Assembly: GCA_015680685.1 (NCBI GenBank)
Contig: MNCI01002478.1
Location: 12,945 to 76,944 of the forward strand
Reading direction: 5' to 3'
Source: Gnetum montanum
Lineage: Eukaryota; Plantae; Gnetophyta
DNA length: 64,000 nt
Shown piece by piece: positions 4,251-40,169 of this stretch (position 1 is its first letter; each line of letters opens with the position of its first letter). The notes under the pieces were generated by a model that was not told where the DNA came from, ran no database searches, and saw only the letters and a program-made list of their open reading frames with translations. The translations under genes were made by a program, and so were the position numbers.

Positions 4251-4980
4251 AATTCAACACACAAATTTCTATGGACAAGCAAGTAAGAATACTTTCGAAA
4301 TCCCCTTCTTATCTATTTACCTTTCATGGGTGGGGTGAGAACACTGTAGTTACATTTCATGCATGAGGTCGAGACACTATAGCTCTACAATGGATTTCTT
4401 ATCATCTGGAGAGGCCTTTGAAACATTTGTAGCATTACCACCCCCAACATTTTGTTGATCTTTTGGAGTATCCCTAAGGAATTTTGCTAATCTTTTGAAG
4501 CTCTTTTCATTAGTGCTAGCACTACTAGCTCTAGGAAACACTTGTAGCACTACTAGCTTTTAGAATTTTGTTGGTGATTCGAGCTCTTGTTGTTAGCATC
4601 ACCCTTTAGACTAGTTGCAATGTCATGGCCCCAAACATCTTTATTGGCTTTTCAAACACTTGCAACTAGTTCATCTATTGTAGCATTTTTAGTATCCTCA
4701 CATCTAGTAGTTTACTCACATCTTATGATATGTGTTTGTTTTCTTGTTTTCTCTAAGTTGTGTTTGTGGGACAAAGCCCTGGAGGTGGTCATGTAGAGAC
4801 ACATCTCATAGTAGCAGCAAGTCACCACATTACTTTGATGTGCATGATTGGACTAGCCAAGCTACTCAAGTGTGTACATCCCTATTTACCCCACTATAGC
4901 CTACATGCATTTACCCCTTTTACCTTGAATTTCCTTGCCTTCCCCTACATCATCAAGTTTGCAACCTCTCTGATGCACAT

Positions 4981-7108: not shown

Positions 7109-7124
7109 TTGGTCCCTCTTTGTT
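7109..7124 (-). promoter_or_regulatory. Polypurine tract
   Basis: The - strand reads AACAAAGAGGGACCAA directly before the LTR start, nearly identical to the PPTs at 16458-16473 and 56749-56764. Confidence 0.85.
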
Positions 7125-8264
7125 GAAGCTTGGAGGAATTAACTCGAGAAGTGTCAGAAAAGAAGTACAAAACACCAAAAGCAACTTGGTAGGAATATTA
7201 TCCTTTGGCACTTGGCCAGATGTCATCACACCGTGTTCTGTAGTACATGGGATTGGGGAAATGAAGTTTGTAGCTAGATAGGGAAATGGAAATTATATGG
7301 ATTGGGAACTAATCAAGGGATTGTGCATGGTAAATAGGATGCTCTGGTGTGTATATGGGTCATGTTGATCCCTGTCAATAGCCATTGTCTAGCAGACTTG
7401 GAACCAAGACACGAGGTGTACGTCCTTGGGTGGAACAAGACTCTGGTTTAGTGTTTAAGAGGACTTGTTGGCACAACCAAAGCCACGTGATGATGTGTTG
7501 TATTCTTTGGAGGAACAGGGCCTCTATTTAGTGTTAGAGGAAACCTATTGGTAGAGAGCCAAAGCTATGCAATGAGATGCTACTTGAGCGTTTGAGACAT
7601 GAGTATTTACTTCCAAGACAACTGCCTTTTCGCCTAGGGCTTGTATGGGAAGTGTCAAGGGTCTTGTGTTTCTTTTTGGATTTTTTGCTCTTTGCTCTTT
7701 GCTCTTTTATTCTTTTTTTTGTTTTTTCTTTTTCTTTTTCTTTACTTTTTATTTCTTTTCTTTTTTTTATTTTTTTTGTAAAGAGCTTTGTTTTGATCCT
7801 GTACTCATGCTCAAGTGCCATGTTGTGTGTTGCAACTGCTTAAAAGTGTTGCAGTGTGCAATGGTGTGCTCAATGTTTTGAGATGCACTAGGTGTGTCAG
7901 GGGTGTAATTAAGTAGAGTATGCTGAGGAATAGATGGGAAATATAATGGGAAATATACTAGTTAATGGCTTGATTAACCTTGTTACGTGTGTTGGGAATA
8001 ATGTGGTACCTTGCTACTGTGACAAAGTGCATTCTCGTACGAACACCTCTGAGTGTCATCCTACAAACACAACTCCAAGAAGACAAGAAAACCACGAGTG
8101 AGTGAGTAATCTTAGACTTGAATAGCAACTTATGAAACAAAGGCACCAGATAATATTTCAGGCACTGAATATGAATGGTAGCAATGTTGTTAGGATCAAC
8201 TGATGATGAGTGAGGCAACAGCTCTGATGAAGTTTAAATGCAGCTACAGATCGGGAGGCTAGAG

Positions 8265-8625
8265 ATGAAGCTACTAGTTTATAGTCTTAGCGGACTATCG
8301 TGGGTTAGTTTTATTTCATAACACATTGGATGTTGCTAGTTTAGCATCGTAGCAGATAGTACATTGCTGGTTTATAGTCTTGGTGAACTATGAGAGGAAA
8401 ACTAGTTTATAGTCTTAGCGGACTCTGGCGAACAAAACTGTGGCAATTTAATGTTGTACCGGATGGGTGCTATTTTATTGTCATTGTGGACAAACTGTGA
8501 TGTCAGTTTATCGTCATAACACCAGGACGAGTGGTGGTGCCAGTTTTAGGTCATGATTCCAAGTTCATGGATTAGATGTGTTAGTTGTGGTGCCAGTTTA
8601 TCATCATAAAGCCAGGACGAATGGT
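8265..8625 (-). repeat. Degenerate tandem repeat with core TAAACTAGCA
   Basis: + strand units tagtttatagtcttagcggac, tgctagtttagcatcgtagcag, tgctggtttatagtcttggtg, tgccagtttatcatcata. Confidence 0.75.
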
Positions 8626-8746
8626 GGATGCATCTATATGATCCTGTAAACAAAAGAAACTAGAGAAAATGATGTTAAATAGCAACTACAGAAAACATGA
8701 ACTAAAATGCACCAATAAGTAGACAATAATGTGAAACAGTGGTAGT

Positions 8747-11700
8747 TTAAGGCCTTTTCGGGCCATGAGAGAATGCGTAAGCTAGCACAATACAAACGAA
8801 TGTCACATATGCACTGCAAAAGAATTTGAAGAGTGTGTGGAGATTTGGCTTGTTTATGGCCTCAAGGGTGCTTTGATCATGTGGTTGTCTCCTACCCGGA
8901 TGTGGTTTTGGAGGTGTTTGAGGCTTAGTCTCCACTGGGAGGCTTATGGTTTTTGCCACTCGTTTGGGCATTTTAGCTCTAAATACTGTGTTGGTTTCCA
9001 CTTGTTTGGACATTTTAGCTATAGGTGTTGCATTTATTGCCATGTGTGTTGCATCAAGAGGCTCCCCTTTCAAGACCTGTGACATGTCTATGTTGTGGTC
9101 AGCTTGAAAGGGTGTGTTGTCGCCATGTATAATGACTTGTCCACCTTCGTATGGAAGGTGGATTTCTTGACGTATCAGTGAGGAAATGGCCCGTTGTTGA
9201 GCTAGCCAAGGTTTGCCAAGAATCATGTTGAAACTAGGCATCTCTTCTATGAAAGTGAACTCTATGCTAGTGGGGAATTGTTCACCTACCACGAAGGCTA
9301 AGTTGATTGTGCTCTTAACTATGACATGTGATCCGTTGAAGGATTTTAAACATGTAGTTTTTGCTGGCATGATCTTGTCTGCCATGCCTAGTTTATCGAT
9401 GACAGAGTATAGAACTACATTTGTTGTTGTGCCATCATCAATGTGCACTCTGTGAATGGTACATTATCCAACACATATATTAATTAACAATGGAGCTATT
9501 ATGACCTCCCCTTGTTTGGGGTTACATTTAACTACATCATCGTGGAAGGCTAAGGTGTTTGAACCCGATCCTTGTGGTGTGTGTTGTGAAATCATTGCAT
9601 GAATGGATTCCATGTTAGCAGGGATGCCCTATATAATAGGAATGGATGTTAACGTTTGTGCTAAGGCTTCTCAATAAGCTGATGATGTCATGACCAGGTC
9701 GTACAAGCTCATGGTTTTATTCTTTTGTTTTAGCATTTGTTTCACCAGGGCCAGTGTAGCTACAAAGTCCATGTTGTTTGCCATTGTGTTGGTTGCCTCT
9801 ACATGGGTCAAGGGCTTGGGCCTGGTTTGTTTGGGATTAGGGGTAGGGCCCCTAGCATTTGGTTGTTGTATACTAGGTGTGGCTTTTATTTCGGCTATGA
9901 ATGTTGTTCATTGTTCATTTGTCCTCTTCTGTTGCCATTTGGTAGTCTTACCCATGTTGTTGGAAGGGTTGGCTCTTGAGGGAGAAGAGGTTGAGACATT
10001 GCCTATGATTGGGCTCTAGGTAGGTGAGGGGCCATCACATGGTGGCACCTTTATGACAAATGGTAGTTTAGGAGGTGTCGTTGTTGTTTGACTAGCTTGT
10101 TATGGCACCTTGATAATGAAAGGTCTCTTTGCTATTGTGGTCAGTGCATCATGCCAGTTTAATGTCTTAGCATATGGCTATGGTGGTACTTTGACCACAA
10201 AGGGTGTTTTCTGTGCTTGGGATTTCATTGAATCTTGCTAGTTTAACATATTAGCGGATGTGTGAGGTGGTGGTACTTTGACCACAAAAGGTGTTGTTGG
10301 TGCTCTAGGTGGCACCTTGATGATGATGGGAGGCCCCTTGCTCATGGAGGCAGAGGGGATTGTTGCCTTGCTGGGAGGCACATGGGTCACAAAAGATTGG
10401 CGCACAAGTTTAGGCTTACTATCTATGCCAATGGAGTTCATGACATAAGAGGCATTGTTTGTACTAGGTTGATTTATGGTGTTGACGTTCAATTGGCCCC
10501 ATTCTATCATTGTCTGAAGATCATCCTGCAAGGCACAACAATTATTGGTATTATGACCGGACATCTGGTGGTAGTGACAAAATTGATCTAACTTGAAATG
10601 TCATGGAACCGGGGGCTCATTTGGTGCTACTAAGGTGGGGTTCCTTAGTAGCTCGTAGTACCTATCATGTCTTCGATGGGAATTCTCTGCTACTTGTTTG
10701 TATTAGATTTTCCTAGTTCTAAGGAGATGCTCTAGTAGTTTAGAAGGTCACGCAGCTAGCAACATGTACTTAGAGCGATCCTTGCTCTGATAGTTGGGCC
10801 TTGGGGTGGCCCCTGTTGTTGCAGGTAGGTTAGTATTGGTGTTTGTTGTTTTTGTGCTTGTGGCTACAATTTCCATTGTTATCTATTGTTTGGCAACGTG
10901 TTGGTTCTTATAAGCCACATAGGTGGGGTCATTGCTGGTTTGTGCAGCTTGTTCTATGTTCTTGATCTGTGTGAACACTTGGCTCAATGTTTGAGTGCTT
11001 AGGTAGTACAGTTTTAACTTAATGAAGTCATTTACAGGTCCCTTTAGAATCGTAAGAAAATACTTTTTAGGGATGGGCTCATGAAGTTCGTTAAGGACTG
11101 CACTCCATCATTGGATGAACTTTTGCACTGGCTCAAGTGGCGCTTGTTTGACCTGTATCAGAGTGTCTAGTGTGGCTTCAGGCTTCAGGTTGTACTTAAA
11201 CCTAGTAATGAACTAGTGTAACAGATCCTCCAAAGAGGATATGGAGTTATGAGGTAAGGCTCAATACCGGTCTAAGGCTAAACTTGTTAAGGACATAGCA
11301 AACACATGCAAGATTGCGTGGGGCCAAGCTTGAAGAAATAGAGTTTCTGATCGAAACATGACTAAGTGAGCATTTGGGTCTCCCTTCCCATTGTACTTAG
11401 TTAACTGTGGGAGTGTGATTCCATTGGGTAAAGCTAATGGTGGCACTGAAGAGCTAATTGGATCATCTTGTAGCAGTCCAGTACTTTAACTACTTCAGTG
11501 TTGGTAGTTTTGAGGTGCTTTACCTCGTCAACTAACGCTTGCATCCATTGTTTTACTTCTGCCCACTCTTGAGTAGTAGGTAGATTAGTTGGTTGGAGAG
11601 ATTGTTGGGTTTTCATTTGTTGCTGTGGAGTAATGTTCAGAGTTTTGATTATAGGGTGGAGCACACCGAAGTAACTGGGTTGTTGAACAAGGGATGTTAT

Positions 11701-12000
11701 TCCTTATCTAGCCACTAACTGTGGGGTGACACCCTGAATGTGTGGGGCCGATGTAAGAAAAGTGGCTCCATGCATTTGCACTGGCGGCATGTACTTGGTG
11801 GACGTGGGCATGGGTAGTCCATGTTGGGACACCAGTGCTTGTGTGCTTGTTGACACTTGGTGAGGGGCCGTCTATCCCACGTGAGGATGGAATGATGGGT
11901 TCACGTAGGCATGGGGACTAAGGGTGTGATATGAATCCTCAGGTTCAGATTATGCCTCGAAGTCATCTACATCATGTTGGTTTTAGGGCTTCTCAGTGGG
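8747..12000 (-). pseudogene. gag: Degenerate gag-protease of nested element (start approximate)
   Basis: LPQLTKYNGKGDPNAHLVMF (capsid, ~11410), HQMSGHNTNNC knuckle-like motif (~10570-10540), protease HRVHIDDGTTTNV (~9455) and FNMILGKPWL (~9220). Confidence 0.85.
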
Positions 12001-12319
12001 TCATCGTGTGTTTTGGCTCCTTGCCAGAAGGAGCTAGGAGATGAGTCTGTGTTGAGGTTCAGAAAGGAGGATGATGTCATATACAGAGGGGATGAATTCA
12101 TGACCTCCCATGTATATGCACTCAAAGTTTCATTTTGCTTCCTGTAATGTGGTGTCAAGAGGAAGGTTGGCCTAAATCTTTACACAGATAAAGTTTTATT
12201 GTTCCTGTGTGAGGATTACGAAGGTGCGTGCATTAGAGTTCTGAGATGACTCCATGGTGACGTGTGATGGGGTAGTGTACGGGCAGGCTAACAAGTGTCG
12301 AGTGCATTTTGGTCTAAGT

Positions 12320-12520
12320 CTGTAGTGTGTGAACACTAAAAATTTTTCTAAGTGTCTAGCATGTGAACACAAAAAAATTTTCTAAGTGTTGTTAGTGTGT
12401 ACAACGTAAATAGGAGAAAAATTTTCTGTGTTGTCAGCGTACACAATGTAAATGGGAGAAAAATTTTCTGTGTTGTCAACATGTACGGTGTAAACGGGTA
12501 AAAATTTGGCTAAGTGTGAA
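12320..12520. repeat. ~38 bp tandem repeat in 5' UTR of nested element
   Basis: aaaattttctgtgttgtcagcgtacacaatgtaaatgggag-like units, about 4-5 degenerate copies. Confidence 0.7.
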
Positions 12521-12739
12521 ATTATGAACAACGTACTCAGTGTATAACCCTGTATGCTCAATGTGTGAGGGTTATACACAGTGTGTGAACACTAGCCACA
12601 ATGTATAGACCACTCTCACAGCATATAGGTACTGTTGCCAGTGTACACGAACTGGTCACAGCGTGTGAACTGGGTTCACAGCGTATAGACTGCAACTGTC
12701 AGTGTATAGCCAGAGTGGTTAGCATGCTGAAAATGGTGG

Positions 12740-12895
12740 CAGCATATAGACAAGGTCTACAACATGCAAGAAAACTAAGCAACATATAGACAAGGTCTAC
12801 AACATGCAAGAAAAGAAAGGCAGCGTGTAGACAGGGTCTACAACATGCAGGAAAATAGGGCAGCGGGTACACAGGGTCTACAATGTGCAGAGTAA
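12740..12895. repeat. ~39 bp tandem repeat
   Basis: agcatatagacaaggtctacaacatgcaagaaaa-like unit, four copies. Confidence 0.8.
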
Positions 12896-13054
12896 GTGGT
12901 CAGCATGTACCAAAGGTGTAGTACAACGTGAAACCTTATAGGTAAGAAAAACTAAGTATTTTAAGATGAAAATGAAAGAATAAGGTAGCGTATATTCCAG
13001 AAAAATAAAAATTTTGCAAAGGGAAAGGCTAAGTCACAGCGTGTACTTGGTACA

Positions 13055-13538
13055 ACGTGCAGATCTGGCTGAAGAATGTGTAGATTTGGATGAGGAAAAT
13101 TCATATCTAGAGCTGATGAAGGTAGATCTAATGAAACCGAGAGTAGATCTGGGACCATGAGGAGTAGATCTACAAGGTGGTGTAGCAGATCTAAAGAGAT
13201 CGAGCCTGGATCGAAGTAGATCTGAGAAATGATGAAGAAGGGGAAAAATTAGATCTAGAGCTGATGAAGGCTGATATGATGGAATTGAGAGTAGATCCGA
13301 GAGTGTGAGTAGTAGATCCAAAAGGTGGTATAGTAGATCTGAAGAGATCAGGCCTGGATCGAAGTAGATCTGAGAAATGATGAAGAAGGGGAAAACTTAG
13401 ATCTAGAGCTGATGAAGGTAGATCTGATGGAACCAAGAGTAGATCCAGGAGTGTGACGAGTAGATCTACAAGGTGGTGCAGCAAATTTGAAGAGATCGAG
13501 CTTGGATTGAAGTAGATCTGAGAAATGATGAAGAAGGG
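13055..13538. repeat. ~148 bp tandem repeat (about 3 copies), AGATCT-rich, adjacent to PBS
   Basis: gatgaagaagg recurs at ~13231, ~13380 and ~13527. atctagagctgatgaagg recurs at ~13104, ~13253 and ~13401. Confidence 0.85.
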
Positions 13539-13555
13539 CCCTCCTTCTAGCACCA
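13539..13555 (-). promoter_or_regulatory. Primer binding site, tRNA-Asn
   Basis: The - strand reads TGGTGCTAGAAGGAGGG, 5 nt after the 5' LTR. It matches the plant tRNA-Asn(GUU) 3' end as I recall it (CCCTCCTTCTAGCGCCA) with one CpG-type mismatch. Confidence 0.8.
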
Positions 13556-13560
13556 GAAAC

Positions 13561-15715
13561 TGTACCTTCTAAAATTGTCAATGCCAGGCTGGAACGTTAC
13601 GGGCACCGAAAGATTCATAGAAAAGCATAGTAGACCCTACGACCACTTGAGGGAAAGTTGGAAATGGATGAAGGCAGAGTACCTTGGATGGTCTACATGT
13701 GGATCAAACAAGGTCTTCCCCAATGTTTGCCGCTACAACACACTGGGTTATACGTAAACTGCAACTAAATGTAAATTAGTATGAAACATACAGAAAATGT
13801 AAACATGTGTAAACATAGAAAACGATGTAAAATGTAATGAAATTTGGTCAAATTTATCAAATGTATTGAAAAAGAGTGTGTACAAAGCACTGGTCTATAC
13901 GTAGTTGTGGATCTACACAAGGTGGACGTATAGCCCCAGTTGATGAGGATGGGTGGTGGCAACTACTGGGAATTTCTGTAGGCACAATGTGAATGTTGTA
14001 TGCTCAGCGTGCAGGATGTATGCCTAGCATGTGAGATCTGTGCTCTCTTGATCTTTGTGTGAAAATGATCAAATTTTTGAACCTGCCCGAACTGAACCTC
14101 GAACCCCTATTTAGTCAAAAATTGGGGTTTTTATATGATCTTAGAGCATGGAATTTGGATCTGAAGTGGGATGATTGGCTATGGGAGGTGAAATTTACGG
14201 ATCTAGCAATAGGTGGGGAATTTATTGATGTGAAAGAATAAAATTTTACAAGTGTACAGCATGAACACTATCTAGTTCACACACTAGGCATGCAAACCCT
14301 TAGCGTGTGAACTTTCATGCCCACAAAAAATGAATGAATAATAGTTGTACAATTGATTTCATTGTTCTAGCCAGTAGATCTAAGCTCTGGCATCCTTTTT
14401 CTAGCTTTAGTGTGTTATTCTAAGCTCTAGGGTGTCCTGGCATGTCCATAGAGCTTCCAGCGTGTGAGTTTGGGTGTCTGGCGTGTTTCTGTATCCTCAT
14501 ACGCTGGGCGTATACGCTCCATACGCTAGACAATAGGTGGCCAAGAGTGAAAGATTTTGACCTATATTTTGATGCCTGAAGCTACTTTTGACCATGGATC
14601 TAGATGAATGATATCCTGAGGATGTTGGATATTGAATTTGGGCTTATTTGGCCTTGCTTTTGCAAGGTTTTGGGAGGCCTAAATTTGAGCATGCTGGCCA
14701 CATGTTGGGCGTGTACACTGGGCGTATAGGTTAGAGTGTGAGCCTCAAAACTGTAATTTAGGAATCAAATTTGTTATTCTGGGGTATTTACACTAATCCC
14801 TAAGTCTTGTTGGTCCTATAGGTCATCCAAGAGCTGATTTTGACTTCGTTTTAATGGAGTTTTGGGCTCATCTCTGAGGTGCATATTGGCTGTACGCTGG
14901 GCATATACGCTGGGCGTAGAGGCCAATGTGTGAGGCCAAAAATGATACTTTTGATTCCAAAAATGAAAGTTTTCAAAGCCTGTGATGATGTAGACTAGAT
15001 TCCCACATCCTGAGGGTCAAATACATGCAAAAAACTTGCCTAAAAGTGCCTATTTGACCTTGTCCTTGGTGCCACACGCTAGGCATACATGCTGGGCGTG
15101 CAGGATGTACATGCTTAGTATGTGAACTTAAAAGTGCATGATTTCAAGGTTAAAAATTGATTTACATGAGCCCATGATGATTCCTAACAATTACCCTATC
15201 TCTGAGAGTTGATGCCTTGTGAAAATATTTCTCTGAAGTGTCTGTTTTGGGTCACCTTTGAAGTGATACGCTGGGCGTACATGCTGGGCGTGTGAGCCAG
15301 CGTGTAGGCAGGAAATGACCCATTTAGTGTCTAAAATTTGATTTTTAGGATCCTGATACCTACCTAGGACCTTAGGGAAGGTCATGGGGAGTCTAGACCT
15401 TCGATTCTAGCCTATTTTGATGAGTTTTTGAGGCTCAAAATTTTCTGCATGCTAGGCCATACGCTGGGCATGTGTAGGCCAGCGTATAGGATGCATACTT
15501 AGTGAAAAACAAGTATTTTGAGATCAAAATTTACTAGGTTTGATGCTAGATGTCACTGTAGTCTTCTGTGGACCCCAGGGAACCATTTCTTGCTTATTTC
15601 GACTTCGTTTGAAGCTGTCTATGAGGTCCTCAAGCTTTAGTCATGCTGGGGAGCATCATGACTTAGCTCAATTCTTGTCAGAGAAGTGCTAAGCTCAGAA
15701 TTTTGTGGTGTTTCA
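13561..15715 (-). repeat. 5' LTR of nested element (2155 bp)
   Basis: TG...CA termini (tgtacc...gtgtttca), colinear with 4981-7108. Confidence 0.93.
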
Positions 15716-16473
15716 CACATGAAAAATTCTCTACATCAATCACAAAACCCATGGTAGATGTAATGAAACTCATCCCATTAGAAGCCTCTATGGGTTGGTC
15801 AAAACCCAAGCAGATGTAACACAACTCATCCTCGGGAGAAAACAACTATCCTACAAGAATGACATAGCTGTGCTAAATCAAAGCCCATTAGGTGGCATGT
15901 AGTTCACCTAATGGAAAGCATCCCATAGCTATCATTTTTCAATGTGCTAAGCCCAAAGCAGGTTTGCCTCGTAGAAAAAGCAAAAAAGTAAAAAAGAGAG
16001 AGAGAGAAAATAGGACAAAACATGTCCCCAAGCAAAAATTAGTACAACTACAATTTCACAATGGGTCCAACCCTAAATCCACATTGACCTTGTCATAAGC
16101 ACTCCAATGAGAGGTCACAATTTTATGGGTAAGCCATTATAGTACCATGGACACTAAATCTCTCATAAGCATTCCAATGAGAGGTCACTATTTTGGTAAC
16201 AAGCCACCTTGATGCTATGTTCACCATCATCTGTGCTAACTTAGCATCTTGTAGTATCATACTATCTGCATTTCCTTTCCCTGTTATCTCTTAGTACATT
16301 ACCTATACCATTTCCCTCCAACATATCATTACCCTTGGCATTCTTGAGCATGGTGTAACAACATCTGATTAGGTGCTCATGAGTGATGTTGGTGCCTCGC
16401 TTGCTATGCTGTTTTGTAGTCTTTGTTGATGTCTCTTAGCCAACTTCTCTAGATGTCAACAAAGAGGGGCCAA

Positions 16474-18133
16474 TGAAACACCACCAAATTTGGGCCACTA
16501 GGTCTTGACTATGAATTTTTCTAAGTGTCAACTCAAAGTAAACTTTTCTAAGTGTTGGGCCTATGCTCCCCACTGTTGGGACTATGCTCGAGAGCATAGT
16601 CAGTGTAGTTTGCAACATAAGTCAAAATTTGCAAGATTTTTCTAAGTGTTGACAACAACCTCAAATTTTACTAAGTGTCAAACTACGCTCTCACTACCAA
16701 GAGTATGCTCTAGATCATAGTCAACATACAAATGCCTAGTTTTTGCAAATTTTCCTAAGTGTCAAGCCAAAAGCTATCAAGCTTGCTTGCCATGGAAGAA
16801 ACAGTTTGACAAATTTTCTTTCTAAGACTACACTCCCTACTATGCTCCACAATGTAGTTAGCATAGTCTACACAAAGACATTAGTTTGTGCCAAATTTTT
16901 CTAAGTGTTTGGGCTACACTCTCACTACTGGGACTATGCTCTAAAGTGTAGTTAGCAGTAGAACAAATTTTTTACAAAATTTGTCAAACTATTGGGACTA
17001 CTCTTCAGAGCGTAGTTAGTGTAGTCATGTAGAATTACCTCTAGAATTCTTTAGAATGTAGCATCATCCTTCATCTTAACTCTAATACACGTTTGGTGGG
17101 TAGGATTAGAAATTTGCATTTCTTTTACATTCTCCATGTGTTCCAAAATTGTACCTATGCTTAACACCACTTGAGAGAGTGAATAGCATAGTCCTGGGGC
17201 ATAGTCTCCAAAATTGCACTATTTTGCATGTTTTTTCTAGTACTTTTTAGTCTATTTAGCACTTGCATAGGTAGTTTGGCAATGTAGTCATAGTTTGATC
17301 ATCTCATAGGGTCCATTGGAGCACACCATCAGAACACCATTTGCTTCATTTGGAGCATATTTGGGTGCATTGTAGTCCCAACTACCCCTCTACCACATGG
17401 TGTGTGATCTATAATTGATAGTAATCCTAACCCTATAAATACCCCAACATTTCATGTTTTCATGGTTGGAAACTCTTGCATTCAAGTGGAAATTTTCATT
17501 TTGAGCATTCTTGCATCCAAGCACACTTGACATTTTAGCAGACTCTGAGATAGCATTTAGCACTGTTGCACACCATCCAAGACATCATAGATCACTATAG
17601 CCCATAGGAGATTGCGGAAGCCAACCTAGCAGGCACAGACTTTATCTCAAACATCATGCTTCATAGCCCAGATACCCTAAGATTATGGTTACACTAACTA
17701 CTACGCTTGTTTGTACACCACGTACCTCCTCATCTTTCTTATAGTTAACTACGCTCGCCACATTTGGGGTTGTAATGCTTTCTCTCTTGCTTAGTTCTTG
17801 TGAAGTTTTTACCATTTTCTCTCACATTTTAGCATTTTACTTGCATTTTCCTTGCTATTCTCTACACATAATCATGTTTTTGCACCTTCATCTTGCACTA
17901 GAAACTTTGACTACATTCACCTTTCTTGACATCATGGACATTGTAAACACCATGCAAACCCCCTAGCATTCATTCTAGCATTACACTATGTAAGTCCCAA
18001 TTTTATTTCCAAGATTATTCTAGGCATTCCATCTCCATTTCTGGTAGGCCCTCATGTGGACACAAGGTCAAACTATGGGCACCGTGAACCTCTCAGTCTA
18101 CCATTGCAGCCTCCAACATTTCTGGTTGCTACA
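16474..18133 (+). repeat. 3' LTR of host Tat-like element (1660 bp)
   Basis: Starts TGAAACACCACC right after the PPT and ends GGTTGCTACA, where composition switches to AT-rich. TATAAATA at 17434-17441. Internal ttttctaagtgt / ctacgctc repeats. The right end is inferred without a paired 5' LTR. Confidence 0.78.
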
Positions 18134-20599
18134 CAGCTTTTCATTTTAAAAAATCATTAATGATCCACTTAGGTACTTTTATTACTTCCCTTTCATAAGT
18201 ATTCTTTTTATATTAATCTAGTGTCTTATTTGTAGCTATCTTCAATATCCTATTCTATTGCTTTGTTCTCAAGTAGCTTTTGTTGTATCTTTTAGTATCC
18301 CTAGGACTTCTTCCTACTTACAAGAAGTTTTTAATCTACTCTTTTAACAAAATCCCATTAACACTAACTTTATATATATAGAGTGCTTTATAAATATAAA
18401 TTAACATTGGAAACCAAACTTCATGGTCCACAGGCCTATTCTTTTTAATTATATTTAGTATTTTAAAAAAGTATTTAAAATTAAGTTTTTTCTTACTAGG
18501 ATTTTTAACCCATTAACTTTCCTATTTACCCAAGCTTATTTTTATAAAAGAAATGTATCCATCTAATTGTATTTCTATTTCAACTATTTTCCTTAAGACC
18601 ATATGTAGATCTATAGATATAATGCTTTTCATCTCATCAACATGAGATAGAATTTGATAGCAAAGGATCATGATCAAGAGCCACAATGCTGATCTTATCT
18701 CAAGAGGGTTGGTAGATGAGTGAAAGCCTAAGCTCTTTGAGTGGCTACACCCAAGCTCAAACCTAGGTCTTCAACTTAAGAAATAAACACCTTACTATTA
18801 GTCAAAATTAAGGTCTAGGTAGAATTTGATAGTGATTATAAAATTTAAGAAAAATTTTGTAAAAGGACTCATCTTATAGATTCCAAGGGACCTTAAGGAA
18901 TGTACAAAAAATTTCTAGCTCATTATTATTATGAGCATAAAAAACATGTATTAATATTTACATCAACCATGAAAGGAACATGGATCTATACAATGACATA
19001 ATGACATTTTCAACTCTCTAGCAAATTTCTACTTCTAAGGCATGCATGTAAGCCTCAGCCAAATTCAAAAAGAAACACGTTACCTTGTAGTGCAAGAACC
19101 TCTACATTCATCCTTTGTTAACATATGGACCTCTACATTTTCCCTTAGTTAACATATAGATAATATGTTATGATTTGATTTGTGATTTGAAAAGTTATTA
19201 TATACATGTTTCCTTAAGTAAACGATCAACACGGAAAGGCTCAATATTCATCCTACCAATTCATTAATTGAGTCTAAGAGTGAAAGTCTAACCTCTTTTA
19301 CAATGGCTATGGACAAACTCAATTCTTAAGACATGAGAAGTAAGAACTTTATCATCACTCTAAATGATGAACATTGTACATTTTTCTCAACTACTAAATA
19401 ACTACCAAACATTTATTTCAACCATCAAATTTCAAAGCATAAGTTGTCATGAACTATATAAAATAGAGGCTTTTACAATGTTTATGATTCATCCATTTTA
19501 GAATATACCTTAGCTCATCTTATGCATTCCCATGAATTGCATTCAAAGTTACTAAAATAAGCTTCAAAATATATCATACTTTACATCTTGACTTCCCATC
19601 AATTACTTTTAAAATATTTGAATGAGCTCTATAGAAATGCAAATGAGATGCATTTAGCTCATATACTTCACTTTGAAACATGAATAATAAATAGTAAACA
19701 AAAGTATAAGGACATTTAATAAATTATTTTACTAATACTTACAAGAATTTTGGTAAACATTCATATTTTCCCCTTTCCAAGATGATTGTAATACCCTTTA
19801 AACCTTAGGTTGAAAAGCATTACATTAGGTAGAACCCCTAAAGAATAATTGGTCATGGTAAGAAGCAAGTTAATGAATGAAGTACGTAGCTAAAGGAGGA
19901 AAAAGGAACCTAGAATGAAGTCATGACCCTTGAAATGAGGTGACACTAAACAATGGAAGAAAAGAATATGTAACTATAAAATTATGTTAAACATATATCT
20001 TGGAAATTTAATCTAATTAGATAAAGAATAATGTAAATTTTCTACCAAAAAGTATGTAATAATGAAAGAAAATAAATAAATTAAAATCCTAAATACCTTC
20101 ATAAATATATAATTAACATAATATCAAAGGTCTAGCTAATAAAAATCCATGAATAATAAAGCTAAAAAATGAATATAGTATCTAACACAGAGCTAAATTG
20201 TCTAATATATTAATAGTCATTAAATATGGAAATATGACATCATTAATCAAATCAATGCACCATCCAAGATTTGCAATCTCTAACCAATCTAATCAACTTG
20301 TAATAAAAAGGAGATATTAATATAAAATTGAGAAAGGAACCTTAGCACCATCTCCAATCAAAGAATAGATAGATCTCATGGAAGCTAGGTCTAGCATGGC
20401 TATCCTACAAAACATGTTAGCAAAGGCACATAAACAACAAAAAAGATTATAGAATCATATCAATCCCACCTCCATCTCACCTATGACGAATGGGGTCCAC
20501 CCTAATTTCTAATTTTAGAAGTTGGGACGCTATTTATACATGTACTGGCATGCTTATTCCCTTGCCTTTCTAGCTTCAGCTTCCTGGCCACATTGCCTA

Positions 20600-20643
20600 A
20601 ACACACTGATGAGGGATGCAAGTCCCCAAAAACGTTTTGTGTT
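20600..20643 (+). ncRNA. Minimal type I hammerhead ribozyme motif, copy 1 (GAAA mutated to AAAA)
   Basis: AACACA CTGATGA GGGA-TGCAAGT-CCCC AAAA ACGT TT TGTGTT. Helix I is a perfect 6 bp. Confidence 0.68.
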
Positions 20644-20870
20644 ACAATAGATGTTGTGCAATGCTTTGATCTTTCTATTACTTTCTGTCTAATAGTTTTT
20701 CTATTTTATAGTTTCTACAGTATTTCTCTTAGCCTCCCCATCCTTTTCCTTGATGCACGAGATCTATTTCTCAAATTTCTAAAATTTCTAATTTTAGAAG
20801 TTGGGACCCTATCTATACATGTACTGGCATGCTCGCCTTTGTAGCTTAGGCTACCTGGCCGCATTGCCTA

Positions 20871-20914
20871 AACACACTGATGAGGGGTGCAAGTCCCCAA
20901 AAGTGTTTTGTGTC
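20871..20914 (+). ncRNA. Hammerhead ribozyme motif, copy 2 (GAAA mutated to AAAA)
   Basis: AACACA CTGATGA GGGG-TGCAAGT-CCCC AAAA GTGT TT TGTGTC. Confidence 0.65.
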
Positions 20915-21221
20915 ACAACAAACGTTGTGCAACTCTTTGAGCTTTCTATTACTTTTTGTCTAACAATTTTTCTATTTTACAATTTTCACAGTATCTCTCT
21001 CAGCCTCCACATTCTTTTCCTTTATACACGAGATCTATTTTCTAAAATTTCTAAAATTTCTAAATTTTTAATAAGTGGGAGTTTCTAATTTTAATGAGTG
21101 AGAGTTTCTAATTTTAATGAGTAGGAGTTTCTAATTTTAGAAGTTGGGACCCTATTTATACATGTACTGGCATGCTCATTTCCTTGCCTTTTTAGCTTCG
21201 GCTACCTGCCTGCATTGCCTA

Positions 21222-21265
21222 AACACACTGATGAGGGGTGCAAGTCCCTGAAAACATTTTCTATC
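21222..21265 (+). ncRNA. Hammerhead ribozyme motif, copy 3 (core intact, helix I decayed)
   Basis: AACACA CTGATGA GGGG-TGCAAGT-CCCT GAAA ACAT TT TCTATC. Confidence 0.65.
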
Positions 21266-22082
21266 ACAATAGGGGTTACGCAATGCTTTGATCTTTCTAT
21301 TACTTTCTATCTAATATTTTTTCTATTTTACAGTTTCTATGGTATTTCTCTCAGCCTCCCTATTCTTTTCCTTGACACATGAGATCTATTTCTAAAATTT
21401 CTAATATTTTTCTCTCTATCTCGTTGCCTTGGAATTTCAGATTCTTGCTAATAGAGTCTTTCGTTGTTCTCTAGATTCTAACCATTTTCAATTTTTTTCG
21501 TTTTTGGTTAGGTTTTAATCCTTTTGCAGGTTCTCCACGAGTTTTGATCACATTGCATGAATATGTGGACCACAACATGTTTCTTTTGATCCATTTTTTG
21601 AAAAATTCCCTACTTACATTGGTCTTCTTGGTTGTGGTTTCTTCTGAAGGTGTTTTCTTCAATTTCATCACAACCTCTGGATGTTTCTTCTCTAGTGTCG
21701 TTGCAACTCGTCTATTCATTGCTATTGAAGATCTTTGTTCATTGTTGTTTTCAGCCAAACGTCTACATGCATGACATTCTTTGGTGTCAGACCCATCATG
21801 TTCACCATTCAAACATGAGGATTACCCTAAACCCTTAACATCCTTCAGCTCTACCAAAAATATTTGATTTTTTGAACGTTTCATGTTCACCTTTGAAATA
21901 CTGTTCTATAATAGTTTTGTTAGTACATCATCTGACCCCCATCTTGCCTATGATGACTGGGGCCCTATCTAATTTTAATGAGTGGAAGTTTCTAATTTTA
22001 GAAGTTGGGACCCTATTTACACATGTACTGGCATGCTTATTCCCTTGCCTTTGCAGCTTTGGCTACCTGGCTGCATTTCCTA

Positions 22083-22126
22083 AACACACTGATGAGGGGT
22101 GCAAGTCCCCGAAAATGTTTTGTTTA
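22083..22126 (+). ncRNA. Hammerhead ribozyme motif, copy 4 (core intact)
   Basis: AACACA CTGATGA GGGG-TGCAAGT-CCCC GAAA ATGT TT TGTTTA. Confidence 0.72.
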
Positions 22127-22714
22127 ACAATAGACATTGTGCAATGTTTTGAGCTTTCTATTACTTTCTGTCTAACAGTTTTTCTGTTTTACAGTTTCTA
22201 CAGTATTTCTCTCAGCCTTCTCATTCTTTTCCATGGTGCACGAGATCTATTTCTAAAATTTCTAAAATTTCAAGGCTAGGTTCATATACCCCATTGCTGA
22301 TAGTGAATGGGTTAGTCTATTATTTATTGTGCCTTAGTTATTGTGTCTACACATCTCTGAGTGCATAAATTTCTAGTATAGACACCGCATGTTCATTTAG
22401 TACTTTAGCAATCTAATCAACAACCACTTGTTCTATAATCTCTTATCCTAGGTGGTACATCACCAAGAATATTGCCTCCTCACCCTCCTCCAAGATCACT
22501 AAAAAGGTAGCGACACTTCTAAAGATTTCTAAGAATTGTTTTTGTTGTGAAGAGAGACACCATTACCTCTTGGGCTATAGGATTTAACCTTGTAGGTAGT
22601 TGGGTTCTTTAGGTTGAGAATATTGACCCACCTTCCTCCATATAATTAAATGTTTAAGCCACTTCATTAAGGTGACTCATTTTAGGATGGTACATAGATG
22701 GATCCCCACCATTN

Positions 22715-22930
22715 AACAAAACATTTTCGGGGACTTGCACCCCTCATCAGTGTGTTTAGGAAATGCAGCCAGGTAGCCAAAGCTGCAAAGGCAAGGGAAT
22801 AAGCATGCCAGTACATGTGTAAATAGGGTCCCAACTTCTAAAATTAGAAACTTCCACTCATTAAAATTAGATAGGGCCCCAGTCATCATAGGCAAGATGG
22901 GGGTCAGATGATGTACTAACAAAACTATTA
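22715..22930 (-). repeat. 216 bp inverted copy of 21909-22124 bounded by single Ns (probable assembly artefact)
   Basis: The reverse complement matches 21909-22124 with no visible mismatch, and the ORF-track peptides are identical. N at 22714 and 22931. Confidence 0.85.
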
Positions 22931-22931
22931 N

Positions 22932-23786
22932 ACCAAGGGACAAATGATCCATAGTTGGAAGGGAACAACATGAAAAAGCTTAGGAGTAGGCAACAATAAC
23001 TCATGTAATGGGATCTCTTTAAGAGGATCCAAAAGTAAAATCTATTTCACAGATTCCTAAGAAAGAGGTTGTGAATGAACAATTTTAAAGAGGAGAGGCA
23101 CCAGGGACTATAATAAGAATTAAGGTCACATTAACACAAGCTTTCCTTGACATGATCAAGCCTTGTGATGTCCAATGCTTAATTCTCCAAGAACTAAACT
23201 TTGGACCATTCTTAGAAAATACTTCACTAGGATTCAAGACACAGTTGCAAAACTCTCTTATGTAGCCAATCATCACTTCCAATGGGGAGTGATTCATGGG
23301 AGAGACATATCTCTTCTGGAACAGTAGAGAAATAGGAGCCACTATGAGAATCAAGGACATTTAGATGTCCTACTTGGCAGAAGTTATTGCACAAGCTCTT
23401 GATTTACTTGATTCTAGCACTCATTTGGCAAAGATCTCAACACATGAAAATGTAGATGAAAAAAGGGAGTGGAACTAGTAGTGTTATGGGGTTGATCACA
23501 AGGAGTTTGGTTTGCTCACACCAATGGAGTACATATACTTCAAGATAGTAGCTTATCAGCTCAATCTAAAGGTGGGGCCAAGCAAGGTAACTGCTTTCTT
23601 CACTTGAGTATGTGCTACTTTAAGCAAGAAATTTCCTATTAACCTTCCATAGTTACTATATTTAAAGATTGAAAAGTGTTTCAAAGAAAATGAACGTGGA
23701 AGTAAAACCATGTCATTTCCATGCCTTATTAGAAAAATTTGTAAGAGGGTAGGGGTAGTCTTCTATGAGAATGACACAATCAAGAA
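22932..23786 (+). pseudogene. Extra-ORF fragment homologous to ~48400-49240, inverted relative to its element
   Basis: Shared peptides QIP.(K/E)E..NEQ, VTLTQAFLD, LQELNF.PFLEN, GETYLFW, HKEF, LKIEK.F.ENE.G. Confidence 0.85.
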
Positions 23787-25929
23787 NATATGATCACAAC
23801 ATGATCAAGGGTTAGCATTTAATGTGTAACTTGAAATAATTGGGATACCTTATCTCTTAGGATAGTTACACTTGGCTAAGTTATGATCACGGTTTAGTTT
23901 ATTATTTTAATATTATTTTATTCTTATTTTAATATTAATAAATAATTTTAGATTTACTGAAGTTTCTTGCAAAGATTAAATTCTCAAAAATTGATGGTTT
24001 AATGTTGTTCTATTTATTAACCCTTTGGGAGAGTTAGAAAAATTTTGAAAATTTTTTTCTTAGAAACCTTAAGGTTTGTGGCCCCCACAACTAGGATCTT
24101 GCCTCCAATAGCTATGAGATTGAAGAATAGAGTGATTTGGACAAATAGTATGAAAGTTATCAACTTTGGAAGATTTTGGGCTATAAAAAATTGCAAAAAC
24201 TTCCCTTTTATTTTGAATCAAATTACAAAAAATTTTAAAATTTTTGATGGTATTTAAAATATTTTTGCACTACGTTGACTAGGCCTAATCAACATAGTTA
24301 TTGATCAATATTAACTTTGTCAAAAATAATAAGAAATAAGGAGTTTTTAAATGAAGTTTGAATCAAATGGAAGTCCAAAAATCCAAGAACATGATGAAAA
24401 TATTAGAAGAGGGTTTTGAAATTTAGAAAATGGAGAAATGATTAAAGAATTAGATGTTATGAAGAAAAATTCCTTAAGAGATGTGCAATTGGATGCATGA
24501 TGGAGCACATAAAAGATTTGATTGCAGCAACATCTAAGGGTAAGTGACATAAATAACCAAGCCACAAGATATGCAAGTGTTTCCTCTCCATAGTCATACA
24601 TGTCCTTTTTGCCCTTGCATAACCTCAACTAAGGAGTCCATGGGCCCCATAGTTGATTAATGATTACCTAAAGTTAAGGTTTAAAAGTTTCAACACATTA
24701 ATCTGAGACATGAAAAATACATGAAAAATGATAGTGAGGTAAGTTATGGAGAGCATTGATGGATGATATAGAGAATGGAATGGATGTCCCAATCATGGAT
24801 AGATGATGTCCCTTATGAGAATCATGGTTAATGATCTGATAAAGTCTAACCTTAGTCCAAACCAAAAACAACCACTTTCAGTGATTTTGCAACATCTCTC
24901 TAGGACTGGTCCACCTCCTTGAGATACAAGAATACTTCCATAGATAACCACCATTCCTTATTTAAGAGGAAAAGAGAAGCAGGAAATGAAAAAGGGCCTT
25001 AGTTAGAGGGGACCTTCAAGCATGGGTAACATGTCATTCAAGTCCCATAACCATTGCGTGTAGCACATTTATTTTGTTTAAGAGGCATGCTTTGAATTTC
25101 CATCATCATTTTTCTTTTTTTATGTGTTTTTTTATTTTAAAATTTTTTTGATGGGAACCACACCATGTTGAGACTTATTCAACTTCCTATTATTAGTTAA
25201 CATGGAATGATAAGAAATCCATGCAAACACACATGCACTCAAGCAAGTAGAAAGGCATAAAGAACTTTGAATCCTCTTGAATACATACATTTTTCAAACC
25301 TTTCAATCCTTTCCAAGCTTGGTAAAACTACTAAGGTTACAAGTTTGTTAAGATTTTATTTATGAAAAAGGAGCCACATATTTTTAAAATAAGAAAACTA
25401 TAGAGTTTCTGGATGGGTGGATGATGTGGACTCACTACTCATTCCATGTAAAAGAAACCAATCTTAGTTATCATTCATCAAAATTCAAAAATAGAAACTA
25501 GACACTGGCAATCAAAAAACATTAAGGACAAACTACCATTAACAATAGCTACAGCACCCCTGTGTCTTGTTGGAAATAGAGCAATTTTATTAGAAGATAA
25601 GGAAAATTCACACTAAAATAAGGAAAAATAAAAAATAAATTGTAAAATATTCAAGAAAAATGAAATGTACTAACAATGTTGTAAAACATAAATTGGAGAA
25701 ATTAATAAAAAAAATAAGGTGTAAGATAAAGAAGGATTTAAACAAAAAGTTGTAAAAATAATAAAGTGTTAAATAAAAAAGTGGAAAAAAAACATGAAAA
25801 ACTAAGAAGCCATGTAAATGTTTAGCATGGATGATCATCTTATTCATGACTAAGTTGTAAAGAGAAGATCTAAAAAATTAAGTGTGGTTGTCCATCCATT
25901 GAGGTCTTGCTTCCACTTTCTTACTTGGG

Positions 25930-28900
25930 TTCATGAAAAGGTTGGACTTATTGCATGTTAACTAGCTACTTTTTGTTCAGTCTCTTAGAGTTGTAAATTA
26001 ACATGGCCCTAGAAGAAAAAGTTTCATCAATAATATAAGGCCCTTTCCACAATGTTTGGAACTTAGTTTGTTGAGGTATGTGTGTGGGGTTCTAGTAAAG
26101 AACCTTATCTCTATGTTGAAACTTGATTTTCCTTATTCTTAGGTCATGTCATTACTTGTTGAATGCCTTGTGCACTTCATTCAAAGATAGGGCTAGTAAT
26201 CATTTTTCATCTAGCATGTTAAGGTTGATCAATGGTTCTCTTTGTGCTAGACTTAGACCAAGGTCTAGGTCACATGCTATCAACTACACATTATGAGATC
26301 AAACTTTTGCAAGATCACCAACCACCATATGATATAGAGACTCATCCTTAGCTTATTCATCAAGAAGGAAATTGCACTATGATTAGTGTGCACAAACACT
26401 TTGTATCCAAGCACATAGTGCCTGAACTTTTGTCGAGCATACACCCCTACCATTAGTTCTTTCTTCATTGTGGTGTAATTTAATTGTGCATCCACAATGC
26501 TTTGACTTATATAGTTGATGTAATATGGATGTTTCTTGTCATCTAATTGCACAAGCATAGCCCTCACAACATAATTTGATGCATCTATCATTATATGAAA
26601 TGGTCTAGACCAATTAGGTGCTCGTAGAATTGCCTGTACAAGCTTCTGCTTGGGGCTTTTTAATGTATTTTCACATTCCTTGGTCTAGATGAATGGAGCA
26701 TATGTATTTGTAAGCTTGACCAATGTTTTTGCAATCTTAGATAAATTCTCGATAAAATGCTAGTAGTAGCCAAAGTATCCAAGGAATGACTGAACATATT
26801 TAATAGTTTCTGGTTGGTGAGTTATTCTTTGGATGACCCTTAACTTATCAAGGTCCACCTCAATCCCTACTTGAGAAATTTTGTGCCTTGGTATAATGCC
26901 CTCCTAGACCATTAGATGGCTATTTTACTAATTAAGCTAAATATTTTTCTTCACACACCTTTGAAGCACTTGCTCAAGGTGGTTCAAGGCTTGTTCAAAT
27001 GTGGTATCATAGGTGGAGAAGTCATCCATGAAGACTTTTAGCCTACAAGCAATTTGTTGCTAAAAAATGCTCAAGACCAAGTGTTGGAATATTGTGGGAG
27101 AATTACATAGACCAAAAGGCATCTTTTGATATGCAAAAGTTCCCCAAGGACTCATGAATGTTACTTTGGCTTGATCCTCTAGCATGATTTAGATTTGGTT
27201 ATAGCCATTATAATCATCCATAAAGCTATAATAGTAATGCCTAGAAATACTACCCAACACTTGGTCCATAAATTGTAATGGAAAGTGAGCTTTGAATGTT
27301 GTCATATTCAATAGTTAGAAGTCAATGTACCCCTACCACTTGCCACCTTTCTTTGGCACAATCACAAGTGGACTAACCCACTCACTATTTCCAATGGGAT
27401 GGATAAACCCCACCTTCAAGAGTTGCTTGATTTTCTCTTTGATGATCTACTTCAATTTCAGGTTCAATTGCCGCTACAACTACCTTTTTTGCCTAATGGT
27501 TGGATTAGTGTAGATATGATGCTAGCATATCCTAGGATCAATCCTTATGAGTTTAGGATATGACAAAGAAAAGATTATTGGCCATTTTTTAACCACCATC
27601 AATAGCATCTATTTCTGTTCAAGTGTAAGACTAACATTGATGATTACTGGCTTGCCATTTTTGAAAAATGCATACTCCATACCAGTAGGTAGAGTTTTCA
27701 ACTCTAAGAGATCTTGTCTAATATTTTCAAGGATTTATAACTCTTCCCAATCAGTATCATCATTTGCATTATCAAAGAGTTGGTGATGAACTTGATCTAG
27801 TTCATCCATGATTTCAATATAGGCACTGGGTGTACTCCTATTTTATGGTTATTGCAAAGTAGGTTCAATGCAAAGTGTACTACTTCCAAGATCAATGCAA
27901 AGTGTACTACTTCCAAGATCAATGATTAGCCACTGGGTGTACTCCTATTTTATGGTTATTGCATACAGGAACCTTTGAATATCTGCCTCATTTGCACACT
28001 ACCTACATGTAGAAATGGATACTCTTTTCATAGACTAGAGTTTCTGTACATAGTTGCATGCTATATTGTTATAAGTGATGCATGGAACTTTCTTCTTCTG
28101 GATCTTTCAAAATGCATTTTTCTTGAATATTTCCAAGGAAAGATCTTTAATACCCATTTTTCATCAATAGTGCTCAACCAAGTCCTTCACATAATGATTG
28201 GGAAGTCCCCCTACAATTATCAACTTTAATTACTAGGAAATCAATAGGATAATACCACCCATAAACAATGGTTAAAATATCTTCTACTAGTTGCAATGAA
28301 ACAATGATGGATTAATCTATTAGTTCTAAATGGATGTTGCCCCTCTTGAGAGGAGGCAAGTTCTAAGCATTGTATTTTGTAAGAAATTAGATTAAATTCA
28401 ATACTTGAGTCAATAAGAGCCTTGCATGGCTCATTCTTAGGAATCTGAAAATAGATGAGAGAACTTCAAAGATCAACTCTTTTCCTATGAAGGTTGCTAG
28501 CCTTGATTCAATCAGATATAGTATGGGTTAATATAACTATGCAAATCTTGAAAGGCATTTGGTTTGGAGGGTTCTTGAAAGAATGGATGCTGAAGATGAA
28601 AGAGATATAGGAAAACTAGTTGCATAAGTAGATGAGGGTTTAGTAGGGCTATTTCTTAAAAAGAATGATCTTTGATGGGTTCTTGATTCCAAACCACTTA
28701 TTTGAGGAGCCAACTATAAGTTAATAGCCCTGGTAGCATTACATTATTACAATTGGACTAGAAGCTCATCCTACATGGATGAAGCATGTCGTAATTGGGT
28801 TAAGGATGGAGGAGCATGTGTTGAAGGATGAGCAAGATAGGGATGTGGGGATTTTCCTCTAGTAGATGGAGAATGAGCTCTATAATACTTTGGGGGGTAG

Positions 28901-36198: not shown

Positions 36199-36544
36199 TA
36201 TGGAATATGGTGATTAGATGTTCCACAAAAGAATTAGATAGATATCATCTATAAATATATATTAAATAAGATGAGATCCTATTCATATAATTTCTATCTA
36301 ATCCCATGACTAGTTTATCCTTTATTAAGAAGATCCTTAAATGAGATGATAAGGATCATCCCCATGATTTTTGGATTCATGCTTATCTCTCCAATTCTAT
36401 TCTTAGAAGATCAAAGGTTATATAACAACATATGTTTATTAGTAAGAGAATTTAAGAGAGTTTCATAAGAATATGTTTGTTCTAAATAAGTTCTTTATTT
36501 TCTTTTAGCTCAGATCATAGATACATGTCCCTTTAGATTCTTCA
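36199..36544 (+). repeat. Copia 5' LTR
   Basis: Colinear with 53927-54276. Ends TTCA, first TG mutated to TA. Confidence 0.88.
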
Positions 36545-36546
36545 TT

Positions 36547-36558
36547 TGGTATAAGAGC
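36547..36558 (+). promoter_or_regulatory. PBS, initiator tRNA-Met
   Basis: TGGTATAAGAGC versus canonical TGGTATCAGAGC, 2 nt after the LTR. Confidence 0.88.
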
Positions 36559-36608
36559 TAGTTAGTTTAGGTCCTTGAAAATAGATCTCTCTAGTATGAT
36601 CCAAAATC

Positions 36609-39994: not shown

Positions 39995-39995
39995 T

Positions 39996-40013
39996 TGGCA
40001 CCATTGCTGGGGA
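39996..40013 (+). promoter_or_regulatory. PBS, tRNA-Asp
   Basis: TGGCACCATTGCTGGGGA versus Athila-type TGGCGCCGTTGCCGGGGA. All three mismatches are at CpG sites. Confidence 0.9.
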
Positions 40014-40169
40014 CTATTAAGTATTACATGTGTCATCTAACCTTAGTGAAATTATCATTCAAGTCATTGGAAAGGACCCAGGATAGAAATATTTATGCAT
40101 GCTAGGCAGATTAAAGTTAGTAGTAAGGTACATTGATTACATGGACCATCTAACATCCAATATGTCTTC

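Follow-up and report, generated by a model that had tools for sequence, protein, structure and literature searches.

A probable fossil of a retrozyme-like repeat family with type I hammerhead motifs in Gnetum montanum

A 64,000-nucleotide stretch of Gnetum montanum DNA (GenBank assembly GCA_015680685.1, contig MNCI01002478.1, positions 12,945 to 76,944; hereafter the window, with positions counted from its first letter) carries, between 20506 and 22271, an array of four repeat units that each hold one motif laid out like a minimal type I hammerhead ribozyme. The array is probably a fossil piece of a high-copy, non-coding, retrozyme-like family, the ancestor of which would have had a real type I hammerhead of the kind that works as a dimer. 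This reading starts from what was observed: how the repeats are built, the motif itself and its pattern of decay at CpG sites, the abundance of the family, the element that hosts the array and the small odds of a chance origin.

The units are direct repeats on the + strand of 271-283 bp, on which Tandem Repeats Finder, a repeat finder and self-BLAST agree, and they share 83.7-89.8% pairwise identity. Unit 1 (20506-20783) and unit 2 (20784-21060) adjoin each other, and the layout is not uniform from there on. A 23-bp minisatellite of 3.5 copies (21057-21139, + strand) interrupts units 2 and 3 (unit 3, 21128-21409). A spacer of about 500 bp (21410-21908, + strand) and a 59-bp segment here called the head (21909-21967, + strand) then separate unit 3 from unit 4 (21989-22271), which raises the start-to-start distance of these two to 861 bp; the spacings from motif to motif along the array are 271, 351 and 861 nt. 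The spacer is unlike the unit, is without a Pfam or Rfam match and belongs to the same high-copy family, in which it makes up the 861-bp period together with one unit. The head is homologous to the sequence preceding unit 1 (20469-20505), and its minus strand is purine-rich and resembles a polypurine tract. The original prediction, made from the letters alone, had described an array of four units of about 280 bp; the four direct units stand, while the array is not a clean tandem and the period of the family is 861 bp.

Read along the + strand, the motif runs AACACA (5' strand of helix I), CTGATGA, GGGG-TGCAAGT-CCCC, GAAA, a loop-less self-complementary stretch, U-U and TGTGTY (3' strand of helix I), a topology of type I. 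In the consensus, helix I has 6 bp and helix II has 4 bp, closed by the pair G10.1-C11.1. The core box CTGATGA (C3-U4-G5-A6-N7-G8-A9) is kept in all four units and in an inverted copy discussed below; the G12-A13-A14 core, the A15.1-U16.1 pair and H17 are intact in units 3 and 4 and spoiled in units 1 and 2 by an A at G12. Otherwise, each copy has decayed in its own way. The motif of unit 1 (20600-20643) pairs at six of six positions of helix I, has one A.C mismatch in helix II and is the only one in which the palindrome AAAACGTTTT is intact. In unit 2 (20871-20914), five of the six helix I pairs and all 4 bp of helix II are present, with an altered helix III. Unit 3 (21222-21265) keeps GAAA, has three helix I pairs left and shows C11.1 changed to U, which leaves a G.U at 10.1-11.1. 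Unit 4 (22083-22126) has intact core boxes and a full helix II, four helix I pairs and two G.U wobbles in the helix III that its dimer would form. The pattern CTGATGA-GGGG..CCCC-GAAA is matched five times at up to 2 mismatches and never in 100 shuffles. The cut is predicted after the third U of GAAAACGUUU.

How did four imperfect copies arise from one motif? Two core dinucleotides read CA, CA, TG, CG and CG, TG, CA, TG in units 1 to 4, and the decay of the motif is mostly at these two methylatable CpGs. Such CG/TG/CA triads at both sites argue for a common ancestor that carried the full consensus, as reconstructed by parsimony from the four copies. In this ancestor, the self-complementary AACGUU would take the place of the helix III hairpin and would pair only between two ribozymes. 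The original prediction thus explained the core differences rightly by CpG decay, and the full hammerhead consensus that it gave is right as this putative ancestor, although no single copy has all of it and the perfect palindrome claimed for helix III survives in unit 1 only. Its minimal type I order with a palindromic helix III agrees, in order and in sizes, with published descriptions (PMC4209133 and PMC7761336). A minimal-hammerhead descriptor, which it had proposed as a check, is passed in its relaxed form by unit 4, while the other three units fail.

All folds were made on natural copies. The 271-nt monomer, taken from cut to cut, is more structured on the + strand than expected (z = -3.9, a value reached by 0 of 200 shuffles) and gives z = -1.9 on the minus strand. 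Helices I and II appear in the minimum-energy folds of the monomers of units 1 and 4; minimum-energy folds of dimers of the natural 53-nt motifs did not reproduce the double-hammerhead fold.

The chance expectation was estimated with a descriptor that combines a 6-nt helix I, CUGANGA with or without one extra base, a helix II that spans 4-8 bp, includes the pair G10.1-C11.1 and encloses a loop of 3-10 nt, then GAAA, a helix III formed by a Watson-Crick palindrome of 2-10 nt ending in U, and H17. In 3.74 Gb of random sequence with the composition of the window, 17 sites pass everything apart from helix I beyond its first pair; helix I reaches 4/6 in four of these sites, and 5/6 or 6/6 in none. 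A first-order Markov model gave no match in 60 Mb. By extrapolation, the full motif should arise at a rate of about 4e-11 per base, so that a chance origin is unlikely: the expectation is about 0.005 motifs in about 62 Mb of this genome (963 windows) and about 1e-7 within one 861-bp family consensus. About one motif would be expected in a genome of 10-20 Gb, which is an assumed size. A chance motif somewhere in such a genome is therefore possible; it is far less probable that a chance motif would also recur in every unit of a tandem repeat that is abundant and has the size of a retrozyme.

The repeats are not private to this locus. Part of the stretch is present in 14 DNA sequencing runs from seven studies and under at least five species labels, which bears out the prediction of a repeat family in a plant genome. 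When the contigs of two of these runs, with different species labels, were mapped on 19900-22700 at 85% likeness, the summed word depth (which is not a copy number) was 2,000-50,000 on the units and on the spacer versus 50-380 on the adjacent long terminal repeat (LTR). This contrast of 10- to 100-fold means that unit and spacer form a family of their own. The period of the family is 861 bp, with a unit of about 280-300 bp and a spacer of about 560 bp, and the unit has been re-duplicated locally at 271-351 bp. Loose contig ends show that the head lies upstream of the unit in other copies too, and contig joints reveal other arrangements, both tandem and inverted. Two of the letters in which the family majority departs from the window fall inside motifs, among the 40 of 386 differences that were listed, and both bring the local copy closer to the hammerhead consensus and restore consensus pairs: one is 20903 G>A, which is position 15.2 in unit 2, and the other is 22124 T>G in helix I of unit 4. 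At both positions, the other letter accounts for more than 90% of the depth in the runs of both species. Metagenomes gave no match when scanned for the core pattern or for the unit's conserved 5' block.

As for the surroundings, the array sits inside a much larger element. Self-comparison of the window reveals a pair of 5.0-kb direct repeats with 91.5% identity, which are the LTRs of this host: the 5' LTR at 55751-60771 (minus strand), and the 3' LTR with its main part at 15716-20468 (minus strand) and the remainder at 4718-4980, split by a nested LTR element at 4988-15715. A gypsy RNase H is encoded between the two on the minus strand (26280-26591), and 22347-25917, also on the minus strand, is collinear with the post-pol region of a related Athila-like element nested on the + strand at 39094-52373. 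The LTR that starts at 20468 (TGGGATTGAT...) is immediately preceded on the minus strand by a purine-rich stretch; this polypurine-tract-like sequence, AGGTGAGATGGAGG (20469-20490), is also the head of unit 1. The LTR pair, the RNase H, the collinearity and the polypurine-like tract together identify the host as a minus-strand Ty3/gypsy element, so that the hammerhead strand is antisense to the RNA of the host. By its sequence context, the array lies in the 3' untranslated region of this element, between an accessory open reading frame (ORF) and the polypurine tract. This antisense location and the 861-bp period go beyond what had been predicted. The units differ from each other by 10-16% versus 8.5% between the LTRs; the usual molecular clock would place the duplications of the units before the last integration of the element, which then carried the motifs along passively.

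The head also aligns with the polypurine-tract region of the host and with about 10 nt of the start of the host LTR. Two other origins for the ~560-bp spacer were considered and rejected: as two diverged units (861 = 3 x 287) its alignment scores no higher than shuffles beyond the head, and as the start of the host LTR it again does no better than shuffles beyond the head.

In metazoans, type I hammerheads combine a helix I of 6 bp with a helix II of 4 bp and a short, palindromic helix III, and they act as dimers in tandem repeats; minimal variants are described from the repeats that flank Penelope-like elements (Cervera & de la Pena 2014, PMC4209133; for the minimal variants also Lunse et al. 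2017, cited in PMC6765202). Type I tandem units of 150-300 bp, the non-LTR retrozymes, are assigned to animals and type III LTR retrozymes to flowering plants (de la Pena et al. 2020 review, PMC7761336), and the same split is made in a 2024 review (PMC11722881). Animal retrozymes have been derived from Penelope-like elements (2026 preprint, bioRxiv 10.64898/2026.07.22.740005). The one exception on the plant side is Selaginella, with canonical type I hammerheads in its Penelope-like elements (PMC4209133), and conifers carry Penelope-like elements after horizontal transfer (PMC8557442). Among the top-ranked literature matches, no prior report of retrozymes in a gymnosperm, conifer, Ginkgo, fern or lycophyte was found; within the literature searched, a retrozyme-like repeat with a type I hammerhead is new for plants.

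The closest likeness is to the non-LTR retrozymes and hammerhead satellites of metazoans, such as newt satellite 2 and those of axolotl, mussel and coral (Cervera & de la Pena 2020, PMC7229834; PMC7761336). These too consist of non-coding units in tandem, 150-400 bp long, and every unit has one type I hammerhead; a helix I of 6 bp, a helix II of 4 bp, low G+C and high copy number are further common traits, and in both cases helix III is so weak, or missing, that cleavage would require a dimer. The Gnetum repeats differ from them in their plant host, in the 861-bp family period with a ~280-bp unit that is tandem only locally, in the UUU cleavage triplet, in the dead state of the local copies, in their antisense position within a gypsy element, and in that no abundant or circular RNA was seen. 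With the minimal hammerheads of Penelope-like elements they share the type I order, the lack of a helix III hairpin, the palindromic 15.x-16.x stretch and the G10.1-C11.1 pair, and also tandem and inverted arrangements of a kind that troubles assemblies (PMC8557442). However, in the hammerheads of Penelope-like elements helix II usually has 6-8 bp, helix I has 4-5 bp, and A9 is followed by an extra base; this base is missing in the Gnetum motif, in which helix II has 4 bp and helix I has 6 bp. The predicted motif thus appears to combine the helix sizes of animal retrozymes with the loop-less helix III of the minimal type. The Penelope-like elements that the original prediction named among the known carriers of such hammerheads have no counterpart among the ORFs checked around the array, which encode gypsy or copia domains or nothing recognisable, with no Penelope-type reverse transcriptase and no GIY-YIG gene.

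The LTR retrozymes of plants (Cervera et al. 2016, PMC4918200) are likewise non-coding and plant-borne, with 600-1000 nt between ribozymes, ribozyme-bearing repeats of about 300 bp and an association with Ty3/gypsy elements. It was with the angiosperm retrozymes that the original prediction drew its contrast. They differ in their type III hammerhead, stable helices, tRNA-Met primer-binding site and target-site duplications, none of which was found here; neither a TGGTATCAGAGC-like primer-binding site after the unit nor a target-site duplication could be detected. A last point of comparison lies in the host element itself. The array resembles the 3' repeats of the Ogre/Tat/Athila elements in its place between the last ORF and the polypurine tract, in its unit of a few hundred bp and in its variable copy number, and is unlike them in that the family is far more abundant than the adjoining LTR. 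Such tandem repeats in the 3' untranslated regions of plant Ty3/gypsy elements are said to have been described by Macas and colleagues in 2009. To our knowledge, they do not carry ribozyme motifs.

If the ancestor did have a working ribozyme, how would the family have spread? By analogy with newt satellite 2, the ribozymes of Penelope-like elements and the animal non-LTR retrozymes, a multimeric transcript of the + strand would let adjacent motifs fold into a double hammerhead and cleave themselves; a host RNA ligase able to circularise RNAs derived from the repeat could then close them, and a borrowed reverse transcriptase, as the mobilising enzyme, would copy these RNAs into tandem DNA. At its present locus, the array would be a passive passenger of the minus-strand Ty3/gypsy element. 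A bolder version is that type I hammerhead retrozyme-like repeats exist in this plant lineage at very high copy, with intact and possibly active members elsewhere in the genome that make unit-length circular RNAs and are mobilised by Penelope-like elements or by a gypsy reverse transcriptase, which would make them the first plant counterpart of the animal non-LTR retrozymes; this is possible, if doubtful.

Several results weigh against a ribozyme ancestry, and most of them can be read in favour of coincidence: the array may belong to the ordinary tandem repeats found in the hypervariable 3' untranslated region of an Athila/Tat-like Ty3/gypsy element, in which a likeness to a hammerhead arose by accident in one ancestral unit and was then copied, with no RNA that ever cleaved itself. 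The interval from the last ORF to the polypurine tract is the classic site of ordinary tandem repeats in Ty3/gypsy elements, and the array fills it exactly, from the end of the accessory-ORF homologue near 22347 to the polypurine tract and 3' LTR at 20468, with a head that doubles as the polypurine tract of the host. The motif lies on the strand that the host LTR element does not transcribe, antisense to that element. Its cleavage triplet would be UUU, a weak site. The Rfam search that had been proposed gave no hammerhead or other ribozyme: the hammerhead families of Rfam 15 (Hammerhead_1, _3, _II, HH9 and HH10) are unmatched in the window at the gathering score, and at E<=10 both in a 3-kb piece and in 71 nt around unit 4. 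The matches obtained were chance ones (MS2, PYLIS, mir-924, sR55 and JPX), and the curated models presumably expect a helix III hairpin, which this motif lacks. Within the motif, 9 of 44 columns vary among the four local copies, versus 60 of 241 elsewhere in the unit, so that there is no local sign of selection and the greater conservation expected of the core did not appear; as to covariation in helices I and II, these four related copies show no compensatory change. The 861-nt monomer has no excess of structure (z = -0.6).

The RNA data point the same way, if weakly. From two runs, of each of which about 1.9 Gb was read, 121 and 113 reads fall on the stretch; they are few (about 1-10x), come from both strands and are mostly less than 95% alike. 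The linear or circular RNAs of about 280 nt that had been suggested as a check left no trace in this weak RNA sample: the reads show no common start or end, no pile-up and no joints at the predicted cut, being few and set against mutated local copies, and abundant unit-length circular RNA was not seen. One run was selected with oligo-dT for poly(A) and the other was sampled at 2%, so that the test is a weak one and counts little against expression.

Coincidence is nevertheless unlikely as an explanation of the whole. About one full chance motif per genome can be granted if the genome measures 10-20 Gb, but the rates per base, per ~62 Mb and per family consensus given above speak against its landing in this repeat. 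The family is 10-100 times deeper in the reads than the adjacent LTR and is therefore not merely a part of the host. The unit size, the tandem layout and the single motif per unit fit the anatomy of a retrozyme, though none of them was a search criterion.

Another possibility is that the ribozyme was real and belonged to an LTR-type, TRIM-like retrozyme moved by a gypsy reverse transcriptase. The ~300-bp unit would then be LTR-like, the 560-bp spacer would be an internal region with primer-binding and polypurine sites, and the RNA would be a circle of 861 nt, that is, the plant plan with type I in place of type III. The 861-nt distance between motifs and the ~300-bp repeat fit the LTR retrozymes of plants, in which ribozymes are 600-1000 nt apart and the LTRs measure about 350 bp (PMC7761336, PMC11722881). 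Purine-rich tracts immediately precede the unit on either strand, a gypsy element surrounds the array, and unit 4 runs at its end into a fragment of a gypsy reverse transcriptase that has the same orientation, a fusion that could come from template switching in a gypsy particle. Yet a tRNA-Met primer-binding site is missing after the unit, where TGGAATTTCAGA comes closest but needs two indels and two mismatches; the unit has neither TG...CA ends nor a target-site duplication; the spacer is missing between units 1, 2 and 3; the 861-nt RNA is without the excess structure noted above; and the clearest polypurine tract is on the strand opposite the ribozyme. Taken together, this makes such an element improbable, and a fossil of a non-coding family with a dimer-type hammerhead ancestor remains the reading that we favour.

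If this favoured reading is true, a high-copy, dimer-type type I hammerhead repeat in a large plant genome would blur the division between type I in animals and type III in plants. It would also bear on the proposal that retrozymes are stripped-down Penelope-like elements (bioRxiv 10.64898/2026.07.22.740005) and on the proposed origin of the viroid-like RNAs of plants from genomic ribozyme repeats. The locus by itself is a fossil; it is useful for marking the family and offers evidence that LTR retrotransposons can carry it.

A fifth match to the core pattern, which the original prediction did not give, lies on the minus strand at 22725-22750. It sits in a 219-nt inverted copy of 21909-22127, that is, of the head and the 5' half of unit 4, which occupies 22715-22930 (minus strand), is flanked by single Ns and is identical save for one N in an arm. 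With Ns at both ends and no determined base that departs from 21909-22127, it was rejected as independent evidence. The window holds three Ns (22714, 22931 and 23787), and these bound two pieces (22714-23787) that are each inverted relative to their surroundings; in the second piece, of 855 bp, the coding similarity to the nested element runs in the wrong direction. The inverted pieces are probably a mis-oriented scaffold block or a fold-back artefact, and the fifth copy probably arose either as an artefact of assembly or by a very recent fold-back.

The gypsy reverse-transcriptase fragment at 22272-22340 (+ strand) corresponds to 21 codons of the N-terminus (KARFIYPIADSEWVS...). It directly adjoins unit 4, antisense to the host element, and its fusion to the unit may be a template-switch scar. 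This fragment is also the peak of read depth of the stretch because its motif is common to very many elements.

Some smaller features recur in the units. Their borders are composed of TTTCTAAAA and TTTCTAATTTTA motifs, and the RNA of the + strand forms a strong hairpin there (21039-21139 and the unit ends); the copy number of the 23-bp minisatellite varies between unit junctions, with a single further copy ahead of unit 4 (21968-22000). On the minus strand, each unit has a perfect TATA-box sequence, TATAAATAG (20530-20545 and equivalent places), and on the + strand each has TATTTATA, about 65 nt upstream of the hammerhead motif.

Searches for genes and sites that could accompany the array gave little. 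The ORFs in the array, in the spacer and in the 22.3-25.9 kb region are without a Pfam match, and protein searches with a 135-codon ORF that runs through unit 4 and with a 233-codon ORF elsewhere in the window found no match. Nothing convincing as a primer-binding site was detected on either strand.

The wider surroundings, from 4718 to 60771, are a nest of retrotransposons, of which the minus-strand gypsy element with its 5-kb LTRs is the outermost. The element that splits its 3' LTR (4988-15715) has LTRs of its own of 2.1 kb, which are 87% alike. The interior of the host contains a copia element on the + strand (about 36198-54279), which is split in turn by the Athila-like element, with LTRs of 0.9 kb that are again 87% alike. 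The pieces of the accessory ORF of the host at 23088-23360 and 23559-23762 (minus strand) have no match in Pfam. The accessory regions of the host (22933-23700) and of the Athila-like element (48401-49168) nevertheless share 47% amino-acid identity over 256 codons, a similarity that points to a conserved extra ORF in this gypsy lineage.

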